From Adineta vaga (taxonomy: Eukaryota > Animalia > Rotifera), in the NCBI GenBank assembly GCA_021613535.1, contig CP075496.1:13764001-13828000 (forward strand): a stretch of 64,000 bases of DNA, in the 5' to 3' direction. The position numbers were made by a program, and so were the translations under genes. Below, one piece after another: positions 278 to 4,699 of this stretch (position 1 is the first letter of the stretch; each line of letters starts with the position of its first letter). Below the pieces are notes generated by a model that was not told the origin of the DNA, did not search any database, and saw only the letters and a program-made list of their open reading frames with translations.

Positions 278-812
278 TAAAGTAACAAAATTCAAAAGAA
301 ACAGCTATGAATCGCTTTCTGATTTTGTAACAACAAAACGCAGAGAAATTTGGTTCAACTTTTTGAAGAGAAATTGAACAAAAAATCGAATACTACGCAT
401 GTCGATCAATAACAAGCAAATCAATACTTATATTAGGTAAAGAACTTCTTTGAAACGACTGTTATGTCAATGTTGTCCTCGTCTGTTTTACTAAAATAGA
501 TTTGACTATTGTTTTCTATAAGACTGGCAAGCATCCAATAAGAATTTTGTTTTGTCAAAACAAATAAAACGAATCTTTATCATAAAAATCACCAGTATTT
601 CACGAAGTTGTGCGACTAATAACAATATACCACTTACCTTTGTTATTCAGATATTTCTTTACATACTACATCGAGCAATCGAGTTTAATCATTCGATTTG
701 CAATGGAATGTAAATGCATAAATCAAATGAGAGATTTATTCATATAAAATAGTCGTAAAATTTCGTTTCTAGTTTAGACGAAAAGAATTCAATGAAGGAA
801 AGAAAGAAAAGT

Positions 813-3483
813 TTATAATCGAATATTTTTCTGTGTTTCTTTTGCTTCATGTTGAAGTGCTGCTTGTTTTTCTTCCAATTCATTTTGTTTTTGATTATAT
901 TTATCTTGCATAAGTTTAATTTCACGTCTCGTTTGTTGTAAATCATCTTCTTCGGTATTTAAATCTTTCAAATATCGAGTCATCAATTCTGATTTATCAA
1001 TTTTTTCCAATGATTTGATATTTTGTCGAATACGTTCTTGATTTTCAAAGATTGATTTAATATGTGCTTCACGAGATTTAATTCTTGTATCTAAATCACG
1101 TAAATTTCCTTGAATATCAACAATAGCCAAAGCTTTATCAAATAATGATGTTGGAATTAAATCACGTTTTGTTGTCCATGTTCGAATTTGTGTATCTGTT
1201 ACTTTACTATCGATCATATGTCGAAGAACTTGTTGAACATATTTCTGTCGAATAATATTTTGAATTAATACAATTGTTTTTTCATCAATTAATTTCGCTT
1301 GAACAAGATCAGGTACTTGTTTTTCTAAAAGCATTTCTAAACCAGCTGTATCATAAATCTTTGTACTATGATGTGCTTGTTCATCAACAATAAATTCAAT
1401 TTCTTCTTGTGGTTCAAGTTTTAATTCAAAACGACTAAAACCAACTGTTGATTTAATACATTTCTTTTGTGTAATAACAACATAACCACCTAACGATGGA
1501 TCACTAACATGATCGATATAAAATTTCGATACAGGTCGATTTAATGAATTGTTTTTGATTAAATAACGTGTTCGTTTTATATGAACTTCTCGAAGATCAA
1601 TACCGATTGGACTTGATTTTGTTTCGATTTTATTTATTTCCGAATTGATAATATCAGCACTTTGAATATGAACTTCTTGAAGTGATGAAGGTGTTGTACG
1701 AAGTATTGAAACAGTTGAATCAAAACCATAACTAAAGCAAAGAGAATTAGATGAGCATTTGAAACATAATGTTTAATTACTTGACTAATTGATCATCATT
1801 GGGTAACATTGGTGTAAAAGCACATTGTGCAACAAAACGTCCTTGATCTAAAACAGCAATACTTCCTGGTGCTAAAACAACATCACTATTATTTCGTAAA
1901 TGAACAGCTTTAATTGCATTTAAATCATTTATTTTTGGATCATAATAAAGTACTAATTGTGCATCCATATGCCATTTATTAACAGTAACTAAAGCACTTT
2001 CATGCGATCGAATTGTTACTGGTGCATTTATTGTATAAACAACATGTTCACTGAGACCACTCATTTGACTTGAATCAATTGATTCATAATTTTCATCATC
2101 ATCATCAGCAACTTGTGTTCGACCTGTTATAGCTTTACGTTTTTTCGAATTTGAACTCTCATCTGGAGGACCACCACGTAATCGAAGTACCAAATGTAAA
2201 GTCGACTCTACAAATATGACAAAAATCATTGCTTTATTTTTTCATCGAAAACAAAACATGTACCTTTTTGAATATTATAATCTGATAATGTTCGACCATC
2301 TTCTAATTGTTTACCAGCAAATATCATTCGTTGTTGATCAGGTGGAATACCTTCTTTATCTTGAATTTTTGTTTTCACTTGTTCAATTGTATCACTTGCA
2401 CTTACCTTAAAGATATGAAAACGATTGATAATAAACAAGATTAACTATATAGACATACGTCAATTGTTATAGTTTTGCCTGTTAAAGTTTTAACATAAAG
2501 CTGCATGCCACCTGATGAACGTGAACTTTCAGTCAATCGGTCTGATTCACGTTCGGTTGCAACAGTTGTTGTTTTGTTATTCTTCAAAATTTCTAATTCA
2601 TTTGCAACAAGAACAAGTTCAATTTGAGACCAATCTTCTTCTGTTGGATTATTTACTGAACCAAATAATGTTAAGTCAACTTTCGATGCATTCGTGTTTG
2701 CTAATGATGAATCAATCTCACATCGGTATAAACAACGCCATTCTTTTGTTGCATAACAATATGAAACATTTAACATATTGAGCTGACGATTAGGATTAGT
2801 ATTCGTTGTAAGAGTAGTTGTTGGTAGTGATGGTGGAGGTGATGCGTCATTTGTATTGAATAAAATTCGAATCAAATCTGAATTTGTATTCGTTGCTGGT
2901 TTCTGATTATTCAATGTTTTATTCAAAACTTTTTCTAATTGATCTTGTAAATAAGAATCCATTAATTTAATTCCATCGATTGCTGACACTGAATAAAAGA
3001 TATATAACTTTATTTTAATCCTCAGTTTAACTTACAATCAAAATGACGAATAAATCCATCTTTATTCAATAATTGAATCATATGATTCGTTGTTGTTTCC
3101 GATGAATTTGGACTAAGTAATGTTGGAACTTCATCAAGTAGAATAATTTTACCGATTTGTTCTTTATTATTTCCTTGAATTGTTAGAACAACTTCAGCGC
3201 CAATGCATTTCTTAAGAAAACTTGCGATTGATTTTGATGAAGAAAAATCATTGAATAAAAAGAATCGTTCAACAGAATTTTCAGCCACAAAACTTTCATG
3301 TTCTTCCGTATCATATGTAACTGTATTAGCTGTTGTACATAGTGTTTCAATAACTAGTTTCTTATGTTTTTTGGCGACATGAATAACAGATGATGAAGCT
3401 GAACGATCGATTGTTCGTTCGAAATAACCCAAATCATTCTTGTATAAAGTAATACGTTGTAAAGGTATCGTTGTTGTTGACAT
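813..3483 (-). CDS. DUF4139/DUF4140-like (bacterial-type) protein with an internal ubiquitin domain and C-terminal coiled coil; 5 exons (3483-3036, 2988-2459, 2405-2264, 2207-1781, 1731-813)
   Basis: All four GT-AG introns keep the frame. Motifs [67 protein letters not shown] and [12 protein letters not shown]...RYLKDL resemble bacterial DUF4139-family proteins as recalled. A 76-aa ubiquitin lies at 2506-2170. Confidence 0.85.
2170..2506 (-). other. Internal ubiquitin domain, split by 2 introns
   Basis: Spliced sequence [76 protein letters not shown]; 67/76 identical to canonical ubiquitin by manual comparison. Confidence 0.97.
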
Positions 3484-4699
3484 CGTTGACTTGACAAAAT
3501 AGGAAAGAATAGAGCATATTTTTTTGCTGCACGTGCTTTTATATTCCTATATAACAAGAGAAAATATGTCAAACTATGGTGCAATACACGCATGAAACAT
3601 CGGCTGGATCATTCTCGAAGTAAAGAAAAAGAAAAAACCAGGTAATGTTATTCACAAATGAAAGACATATAAACTCTTCAAATAAAATATTTATCGAATC
3701 AATATGTATTTTTTTGGAACATCCATATTTTACCCAATACAAAGATAGATTGTTGTTTTCGATTTATTATTTATCAAGAAAAAAAATTGAATGATTCATA
3801 TTCCGAAATAGTTTATAATGGAAGAATTGTTGAAGTGTCATTTGTGATTGATTTACCTGGTTTCTTTTCAGCTAATAATTCATAATAAATTGTTGAAGCA
3901 TTCTTTGCTTCCATCTCAATATCTTCGGTAGCTGTTATAAAAGTACTAGTAGCACTAGACGAAGACACGTTTACAATTAAAATTAATTTCTTATTTCACT
4001 AATATGTGTAACAGTTTTAATAACACATCGGCTTATATAACAATGTAATGAACTTTTTATTTGAATACATATTTTAATAGTCGCAGGAGTGATAATTATA
4101 CCAACAGAATTTTAACGATTGAATTTAGCGATTTATTTACCTGTGCGATATAAACTTCAAATACTCCATTCAAAAATTGGACTTGAAAGAGGAAGACTTT
4201 GACGAACGAAATCGACTTCTTCACTTACAATAACAAGGAGAAAAACAGAAGACAACACCTAAAAGAAAATCAACCCTCATTCATATAAGTTTTTTCTTTC
4301 TTTCACACAGTATCTTCTTCATTGATGATAGAGTGTTGAAAAGTCACGTCTACTCGAATGTGCAATATGCTTATCTAGTATTACTACTAGTCATAATGAT
4401 AATGATGAATACAAAAAAAAGGGAAATGTTCTGTTTCTTTCTTTCTGGAAAATGAACCGTCTGGGTCAATAATCAATCAATAGAATATATTTCCTCAAGC
4501 AAGAATCCGTTTTTTTCCTATCATATTCATTCATATGACCATCTGCTAGATAGACTGACCTTTTTCTTCTTTTTTTTTGTTGCTAGATGCATATATGTGC
4601 ATCTTTCTGTTCCATTAGTTCCTCCTCACATTAACGTAAATGTTGAACTTTATTATTATTTAGAAAGAAAGATTCATTGTAATATAAAAGTGAAGAAAG

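Follow-up and report, generated by a model that had tools for sequence, protein, structure and literature searches.

Ubiquitin normally acts after it has been attached enzymatically to a target protein, and ubiquitin fusions that are encoded as such are normally cut at once. What, then, is the meaning of a near-canonical ubiquitin that is written into the middle of another protein? This question is raised by a locus of the bdelloid rotifer Adineta vaga, located in a window of 64,000 nucleotides (the whole stretch of DNA analysed here; assembly GCA_021613535.1, contig CP075496.1, positions 13,764,001 to 13,828,000). On the minus strand, from position 3483 to position 813 of the window, lies a five-exon gene of 2466 nt (821 codons plus stop), hereafter the ubiquitin-scaffold gene, in which a complete ubiquitin separates the two halves of a non-ubiquitin scaffold. 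A first-pass annotation had read it as a bacterial-type DUF4139-like protein that captured a host ubiquitin in the rotifer lineage. Our analysis shows that the interest of this architecture is that of an undescribed family spanning several eukaryotic supergroups and not that of a rotifer curiosity. As the best explanation, which we hold to be slightly more probable than its negation, we propose that the family carries a ubiquitin signal that acts in cis and is proof against deubiquitinases (DUBs), that its scaffold derives from bacteria, and that bdelloids received the already fused gene from a protist.

Results

Whether the locus holds one gene or two can be read from transcript data. Contigs of public runs, which stem from three studies and bear two organism labels, were aligned to positions 700-3600 of the window, and those of four runs skip exactly the intervals 2989-3035, 2406-2458, 2208-2263 and 1732-1780, i.e. 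four introns of 47, 53, 56 and 49 nt, all of the GT..AG type (4/4). From the exact removal of these intervals it follows that the runs, whose RNA nature we presume, contain spliced transcripts. Two of the introns lie within the ubiquitin: intron 2 (2406..2458, minus strand, 53 nt, GT..AG, phase 0) separates D16 from V17 and intron 3 (2208..2263, minus strand, 56 nt, GT..AG, phase 1) separates K63 from E64, and both were found spliced in runs X1, X3 and X5. One contig runs from exon 5 through exon 4 into 50 letters of exon 3, a second one comprises exons 3 and 2, and further contigs connect exon 2 with exon 1. Breaks between contigs are confined to the middle of exon 3, where depth rises to thousands because of words common to polyubiquitin mRNA. 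Since the contigs join the ubiquitin exons to scaffold exons on both sides, the ubiquitin exons are part of the same transcript; both scaffold-ubiquitin junctions are spanned, and no separate ubiquitin gene was seen in these contigs. With a copy number of one in the 100.8-Mb, six-contig assembly, the ubiquitin-scaffold gene is one real, expressed gene, and the single spliced five-exon model of the first-pass annotation stands.

The ubiquitin begins in exon 2 (2459-2988), the end of which encodes its codons 1-16 (2459..2506; from the translation and the spliced contigs). It continues through exon 3 (2264..2405; codons 17-63 and the first base of codon 64) and is completed at the start of exon 4 (1781-2207), where positions 2164..2207 encode codons 64-76, ending in RLRGG, and then Pro-Pro; all exons lie on the minus strand. 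The 76 residues are identical at 67 positions to the canonical unit of the genome's own polyubiquitin locus, the differences being I3L, F4Y, L15I, E16D, E18S, P19A, N25Q, A28T and L43M. In agreement with the earlier reading of the translation, all seven lysines, the L8/I44/V70 patch and the RLRGG end are intact, with SSGG before the ubiquitin and PP after it. The near-identity, the seven lysines and the L8/I44/V70 patch place this unit with ubiquitin proper, and it also belongs to the ubiquitin family PF00240, which matches exon 3 alone with 77 bits (cut-off 25.4; E 9.3e-22).

The exons of A. vaga were searched individually, and as a full-length proxy we used the ortholog of Adineta ricciae (P0168), which is 83% identical across all five exons and has its exon borders at the same residues. 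On this protein PF00240 scores 101.5 bits (profile 1-72), and the modelled A. ricciae ubiquitin (residues 305-380) superposes on solved ubiquitin at 0.7-0.9 Å with a Z of 16. The one hallmark that was not found is a free or releasable C-terminal Gly-Gly, the ubiquitin being internal and followed by Pro-Pro. Unless it is cleaved the embedded ubiquitin could not be conjugated as a modifier, and the sequence argues against cleavage.

How the ubiquitin is kept across the family was scored on 93 members in which it is ungapped. These ubiquitins are 68-96% identical to ubiquitin (mean 86%), and the mean identity between members is 80% for the ubiquitin versus 33% for the scaffold. K6, K11, K27 and K48 are conserved in 100% of the members, K63 in 97% and K33 in 94%; L8, I44 and V70 are conserved in 96-97%, and R42, R54, Y59, E34 and R72 in 98-100%. 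The canonical share amounts to 94% for residues 29-76 and to 71% for residues 1-28. At the upstream junction, formed by a Gly/Ser-rich linker, M1 is substituted in a quarter of the members.

The downstream junction is the most telling part of the protein. G75 is kept in 98% of the members and G76 in only 47%, and of the 44 members that retain G76, 38 have Pro next to it. The junction thus reads GG-Pro in 38/93 members, carries a substituted G76 in 49/93 and shows GG plus another residue in 6/93, so that the end of the ubiquitin is blocked in 87/93. A Pro after GG and a substitution of G76 are the two classical routes by which linear ubiquitin fusions become resistant to DUBs. The family tree (see below) demands at least 19 switches among the junction states, and the blocked-end pattern is therefore not inherited from one ancestor. 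The GG-Pro-Pro junction of A. vaga should, as judged from its residues, resist deubiquitinases. Indeed, the Ub-Pro bond is cleaved inefficiently by most DUBs (PMC4522658).

The scaffold surrounds the ubiquitin as one continuous protein. Exon 1 (3036..3483, minus strand; ATG at 3483-3481, 149 codons plus 1 nt, donor GT at 3035-3034) encodes an N-terminal beta domain that contains a small Sm/Hfq-like barrel; a signal peptide is absent. The scaffold part of exon 2 (2507..2988) encodes a helix, the initial strands of the DUF4139 beta-sandwich and a low-complexity linker up to SSGG. The remainder of exon 4 (1781..2076) holds a conserved segment and strands that continue the beta-sandwich. Exon 5 (813..1731; stop at 815-813, frame open from 1730) contributes the rest of the sandwich and a C-terminal two-helix coiled-coil hairpin, in which the most conserved motif of the scaffold is located (about 939-1043, minus strand); its residues Q, R, N, R, Y and E are invariant in bacteria and eukaryotes.

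DUF4139 (PF13598) matches exon 2 at about 2606-2773 on the minus strand (profile 1-51, E 1.3e-7) with 32.0 bits, marginally above the gathering cut-off of 31.8. The A. ricciae ortholog passes this cut-off with 37.3 bits in a single stretch (217-525) that spans the ubiquitin, and the domain is found at E<=1 in 45/46 members. As the bacterial relatives described below stay under the cut-off (25-26 bits) and the two Adineta sequences lie just over it, the clade represents a divergent branch of DUF4139. The matches to TIGR02231, the MuiA family, are colinear on both sides of the ubiquitin, with profile positions 192-244 in exon 2 and 300-404 in the post-ubiquitin part of exon 4 (E 2.1e-6; 27-28 bits each), and hence one scaffold runs through the ubiquitin. 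Full-length TIGR02231 scores are 51.9 bits for the A. ricciae ortholog, 35-40 for protist members and 29-37 for bacterial relatives. With 51.9 versus a cut-off of 112.6 bits the gene is related to this subfamily yet is not a member of it. Of the domain assignments considered, the DUF4139 type therefore holds, and TIGR02231 membership does not. Nor does the DUF4140 proposed at first sight: exon 1 gives no hit to DUF4140 (PF13600) up to an E of 10, and the domain is absent among the best 25 of the 35 Pfam families that match 46 N-terminal halves at E<=1.

The N-terminus of a bacterial relative (50-292) is aligned only by the full TIGR02231 model (profile 2-245). The Sm-like barrel of the scaffold is indicated by Hfq matches with Z 8-9 on the bacterial model, by an LSm profile at E 0.02-0.05 and by Pfam LSM in 6/46 members. 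The AlphaFold model of the A. ricciae ortholog has a mean predicted local distance difference test score (pLDDT) of 82, with the flanks of the ubiquitin (281-303 and 378-414) disordered; pLDDT is about 30-35 in the pre-ubiquitin linker 281-303 and exceeds 90 from about residue 427. Two flexible linkers of about 25-35 residues hold the ubiquitin, and the helices of the hairpin extend over residues 707-754 and 761-817. Fold searches with the whole eukaryotic model returned only ubiquitin and ubiquitin-like (UBL) chains, and those with the bacterial model returned generic coiled-coil hairpins, a weak ribophorin I match and Hfq-like small barrels, which are functionally uninformative. When the two scaffold halves were compared as profiles with the sequences in the PDB, only PilO (E 0.003) and LSm (E 0.02) came up, and Pfam on the post-ubiquitin halves gave coiled-coil noise only.

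In A. vaga itself two further DUF4139 genes were noticed (L012, G000:C4:11608266-11609300, and L013, G000:C3:6367190-6368170). Their Pfam matches (115 and 96 bits, profile 30-205) are apparently uninterrupted by ubiquitin, and they are probably an ohnolog pair of ordinary DUF4139 members.

An exhaustive, profile-free search with exon 5 yielded 370 representatives at E<=0.001. Every full-length relative (over 40 clusters) shares the architecture, in the order exon 1 region, exon 2 region, ubiquitin, exon 4 region, exon 5 region, and so do all hits of at least 550 amino acids bar one fragment. Members occur in all sequenced bdelloids (Adineta ricciae, A. steineri, five Rotaria and Didymodactylos). 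Among protists they occur in the Amoebozoa (Dracoamoeba, Flabellula, Rhizamoeba, Arcella, Mastigella and Mastigamoeba), in the green alga Cymbomonas (genome record KAK3252270.1) and in the hemimastigote Spironema. No animals other than bdelloids are among the named hits. The database labels these proteins 'ubiquitin-like domain-containing protein' or 'ubiquitin', and we found no paper on the embedded-ubiquitin family or on the function of DUF4139, which does not prove that none exists elsewhere. The family is, in this sense, undescribed, and it is patchily distributed over several eukaryotic supergroups. The same insertion in several supergroups also bears out the suggestion, first made from the introns inside the ubiquitin, of a long-established chimera.

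One protein of Rotaria sp. Silwood2 (P0169, 742 amino acids) is 97% identical to another (P0173, 818 amino acids), but in its annotation ubiquitin residues 1-63 and the last part of the linker are missing, a stretch of 13 residues being retained; the gap could stem from an exon skipped in annotation, from an isoform or from an allele with a partial deletion.

The closest ubiquitin-free proteins are, as had been supposed, bacterial: proteins of about 740 amino acids from Acidobacteriota (Pyrinomonadaceae, Blastocatellia), with more than 3,700 hits, on contigs that carry ordinary bacterial neighbours. Bacterial and eukaryotic scaffolds can be aligned over their whole length with 21-23% identity and about 20 invariant residues in common. 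The bacterial relatives possess signal peptides; the eukaryotic proteins have nothing ahead of the first conserved strand. When the two groups are aligned, the ubiquitin falls at a variable low-complexity stretch of the bacterial proteins, and the bacterial AlphaFold model (mean pLDDT 78) has a disordered loop (302-387) at this site, so the placement of the ubiquitin in a variable linker proved right. Downstream of one bacterial relative (P0206), at a distance of 52 nt and on the same strand, lies a VIT-VWA gene (L019 8206-10488). It is a possible operon partner and could be a clue to what the scaffold originally did.

A maximum-likelihood tree was calculated from 66 full-length sequences, with the ubiquitin columns excluded. 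The ubiquitin-bearing proteins form one clade (support 100), distant from the bacterial pair. The bdelloids group together (99), 13 sequences of unnamed microeukaryotes are their sister group (97), and the two together are nested among Amoebozoa-labelled sequences. The genes of the sister clade are uninterrupted open reading frames of 800 codons on eukaryotic contigs, and their neighbour genes are intron-split. For a CAF1/PARN-like neighbour on a sister contig only unnamed metagenome relatives exceed 35% identity. Given the intron-split neighbours and no named relative above 35%, the sister organisms are unsampled microeukaryotes and not animals. The derived residues E16D, E18S/D, A28S/T, L43M and S57A are common to the bdelloid and protist ubiquitins. 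The tree thus does not uphold a fusion made in rotifers.

The introns add a time scale within the bdelloids. Didymodactylos has a single intron (K63|E64, phase 1) and Rotaria socialis has four, exactly at the A. vaga positions. Intron 3, being common to Rotaria socialis and Didymodactylos carnosus, is therefore at least as old as crown bdelloids, and the position of intron 2 is occupied in Rotaria socialis and empty in Didymodactylos. The surroundings of the gene are in part conserved as well. A GH162-like gene lies downstream at about 18 kb in A. vaga, 3.7 kb in A. ricciae and 4.5 kb in R. socialis (83-90% amino-acid identity). In A. vaga it was located at about 1130-2790 of L030 (G000:C4:13744600-13746300), and extra genes are inserted between. 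The DUF2807 genes found upstream in A. ricciae were not found in the A. vaga window. The next gene downstream in A. vaga, on the same strand, has a UQ_con exon with 39 bits (L027 1629-1997; G000:C4:13761128-13761496, minus). A functional link to this neighbour was considered and rejected: no homolog adjoins the A. ricciae or R. socialis orthologs, and the adjacency is therefore specific to A. vaga.

At the DNA level the embedded ubiquitin was compared with the host's polyubiquitin loci over codons specifying the same residue. The fraction of identical codons is 50-62% between embedded ubiquitin and polyubiquitin, 58-62% between unlinked loci and 66-81% between repeats within a locus. Exon 3 agrees with the A. 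ricciae ortholog at 127/141 positions and with any polyubiquitin unit at 121/141 at most. Recent gene conversion from host polyubiquitin was rejected on these two grounds.

Polyubiquitin repeats of this genome also contain introns, at more than one position. In the first repeat of the locus on the same chromosome (L003, G000:C4:7740671-7743805, minus) a 62-nt phase-0 intron separates codon 16 from codon 17, and a repeat of another locus (L009, G000:C6:3649389-3652523, at 702-989) has a 60-nt intron at codon 51/52. Because Didymodactylos is without the 16|17 intron and the L009 intron lies at 51/52, we read the coincidence at 16|17 as parallel gain at a proto-splice site, which is not proven. 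The second repeat of L003 (reverse complement, about 1221-1447) reads MQIFVKTLWQNNH.., apparently with one base deleted and the frame shifted in consequence; either the repeat is broken or the assembly is in error here.

Discussion

The pattern of conservation suggests that the ubiquitin has been selected to stay attached and exposed on its flexible tethers. The receptor-binding patch and the acceptor lysines would stay in use, and donor functions would be impossible. By analogy with substrates of the ubiquitin fusion degradation (UFD) pathway, it may thus serve in cis as a lasting ubiquitin signal on which chains can be built, a natural relative of the UFD type; the sequence prerequisites of this comparison, a blocked junction and conserved K48, K29, K11 and K63, are present.

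We picture the mechanism as follows. An exported bacterial protein would have turned cytosolic in eukaryotes with the loss of its signal peptide, and a ubiquitin would have been inserted once, early in the family. The altered junction would stop deubiquitinases from excising it, and the embedded ubiquitin would then be a permanent cis signal, readable by ubiquitin receptors, that chain-building E2/E3 enzymes could extend as they do with UFD substrates. The scaffold and its bound partners could in this way be routed to the proteasome, to p97, or into autophagic or endosomal sorting. The bdelloid ancestor would have obtained the fused gene from a protist, introns being added later.

A related proposal goes further and sees a 'born ubiquitinated', self-tagged adaptor or cargo (proteasomal, p97 or autophagic) that bears, on flexible tethers, a DUB-proof ubiquitin and next to it a motif resembling an LC3-interacting region (LIR), was retained in several eukaryotic supergroups and was transferred to bdelloids; in this form we consider it unlikely. 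The motif in question lies in the linker behind the ubiquitin (acidic tract plus YESI, 2077..2106, minus strand), and it is a conserved, eukaryote-specific motif whose core resembles that of a LIR. At the aligned site 63/64 eukaryotic members have [FY]-E-x-[LIV], with F/Y in 100% and E in 98%. In its fuller form the motif consists of an acidic tract and then [F/Y]-E-[S/A/K]-[L/I/V]-[D/N/S], directly after the downstream linker. It does not occur in the bacterial relatives.

An autophagy version of our explanation, in which permanent ubiquitin and LIR-like motif together would make a self-tagged cargo or adaptor, draws on exactly these features. Compared with LIRs, or Atg8-interacting motifs, in which an accessible [W/F/Y]-x-x-[L/I/V] core between acidic residues binds Atg8, the core pattern with its upstream acidic tract is present in 63/64 members and falls in a low-confidence region of the ortholog model (pLDDT 40-50). 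The fit to an Atg8-interacting core is offered as a hypothesis, not as a finding. The conservation is, however, stricter than that of typical LIRs (E in 98%, with a conserved QMSGL next), and it could instead mean a structural role, the segment perhaps packing on the beta-sandwich. We therefore regard the autophagy version as quite improbable.

Could the junction be a processing site, at which DUBs cut after GG and free the C-terminal half as in ubiquitin-ribosomal fusions? The intact RLRGG of A. vaga, the 98% conservation of G75 and the few DUBs that are cited as able to cleave a Ub-Pro bond would allow it. A blocked end in 87/93 members, reached through at least 19 switches, runs directly counter to the demands of a cleavage site, and both halves build one beta-sandwich domain, which makes this explanation very unlikely.

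Still less credit can be given to an integrated decoy, i.e. a displayed ubiquitin that traps or senses pathogen effectors, DUBs or E3s. Near-canonical ubiquitin surfaces are what a mimic of free ubiquitin requires. But no immune-type domain, variability or gene expansion was seen, the gene being single-copy in A. vaga; its evolution has been conservative across very distant hosts, and a DUB decoy would be expected to retain a cleavable end. Just as improbable is a mere filler, a compact fold that replaced a loop without any signalling and stayed near-identical to ubiquitin by gene conversion or chance. It is true that the ubiquitin sits where the bacterial relatives have a disordered loop that looks dispensable. 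Against a filler speak residues 29-76 that are 94% canonical beside a scaffold of 33% identity, and four invariant lysines. Moreover, S57A (in 49% of the members) and E16D (in 52%) persist, which conversion would erase, and synonymous identity to polyubiquitin is not in excess.

The weakest scenario is the one from which this study set out, a rotifer-specific chimera in which a bacterial scaffold entered rotifers and then captured the rotifer's own ubiquitin unit. It is barely credible, in spite of a scaffold of bacterial type, of an intron 2 (16|17, phase 0) that coincides with that of the first repeat of the same-chromosome polyubiquitin locus and of exon 3 DNA that is 88-89% identical to that locus versus 79-84% to others, since Amoebozoa, a green alga, a hemimastigote and numerous unnamed protists carry the insertion too, the ubiquitin-bearing members form one clade, bdelloids and their protist relatives have derived residues in common, codon identity to polyubiquitin is no higher than between unlinked loci, exon 3 resembles the A. 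ricciae ortholog more than it does any polyubiquitin unit, and the 16|17 intron is missing in Didymodactylos and the other polyubiquitin intron lies at 51/52.

We thus return to a protected cis-acting ubiquitin on a bacterial-derived scaffold, transferred to bdelloids in fused form. The same insertion site across eukaryotic supergroups means that the fusion is old and not a rotifer capture. As bdelloids are the only animals named and are nested among protists, transfer is the probable source of their fused gene. Read most simply, the bdelloid ancestor took up the gene once, when it was already fused, and vertical descent with stepwise intron gain followed.

Several points weigh against this explanation as a whole. 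K29, the lysine of the UFD pathway, is the least conserved of the seven (86% of the 93 members). Six of the 93 members have an unprotected GG-X end, no clear relative of the scaffold was found among solved structures by fold and profile searches, and the DUB resistance of the embedded ubiquitin is a prediction from sequence. Some members known from transcriptomes, those of the diatom Odontella and of one dinoflagellate-labelled set, could owe their labels to contaminants. The remaining members come mostly from metagenomes and metatranscriptomes, which makes the taxonomic range and the bdelloid donor uncertain, and ancient vertical descent with loss in all other sampled opisthokonts stays formally conceivable. 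Finally, a few DUBs are cited in PMC4522658 as able to cleave the Ub-Pro bond.

If the explanation is true, the family would be nature's equivalent of the artificial Ub-Pro and Ub-G76V reporters that have served UFD research for decades. It would offer a route to ask for the in-vivo role of a permanent mono-ubiquitin and to separate acceptor and reader surfaces from donor surfaces; the conservation map already sets residues 29-76 apart from residues 1-28. It would also be a clean example of an exported bacterial protein re-used in the eukaryotic cytosol, and in bdelloids of a foreign eukaryotic gene that gained spliceosomal introns stepwise after its arrival.

Comparison with known systems

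Among the systems with which the ubiquitin-scaffold family can be compared, the DUF4139-type proteins of Acidobacteriota are alike in their (predicted) N-terminal Sm-like beta domain, their beta-sandwich and their C-terminal hairpin, and both groups lie under the TIGR02231 cut-off. Unlike the eukaryotic proteins they have a signal peptide, and a disordered loop of 85-115 residues where the eukaryotic family has its ubiquitin. The luminal domain of ribophorin I/Ost1 is the best Foldseek match of the bacterial model (8b6l_O, E 1.6e-5; also 6s7o_E, 8pn9_E and 6c26_1), and like the bacterial relative it belongs to an exported or luminal beta-sandwich protein. The probability of 0.66, a TM-score of about 0.1 and 6-8% identity, with profile searches unsupportive, make this a resemblance only.

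Ubiquitin precursors (polyubiquitin, Ub-L40 and Ub-S27a) and rarer fusions such as Ub-actin likewise encode a canonical or near-canonical ubiquitin in frame with another protein. The ubiquitin of the precursors is N-terminal and released by DUBs; the embedded ubiquitin is internal and its junction appears to be selected against cleavage. An integral, unconjugated ubiquitin fold is also known from UBL proteins (Rad23, Dsk2, parkin, BAG1 and the inserts of USP4/USP7), and the secondary hits of the ortholog and family searches (Pfam, NCBIfam, structure) are indeed UBL families. UBL domains of this type are read by ubiquitin receptors and are not known to keep all lysines. They are only about 15-35% identical to ubiquitin, as opposed to 68-96% in the embedded family.

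A further parallel is found in UFD substrates (the engineered Ub-Pro-X and Ub(G76V)-X reporters and the frameshift product UBB+1), which share a linear, non-removable ubiquitin, intact lysines and the same two kinds of block. These substrates are artificial or pathological and have their ubiquitin at the N-terminus, whereas the family described here is natural and conserved, with an internal ubiquitin of which neither end is free. The family thus falls among the integral ubiquitin-domain proteins and the linear ubiquitin fusions.

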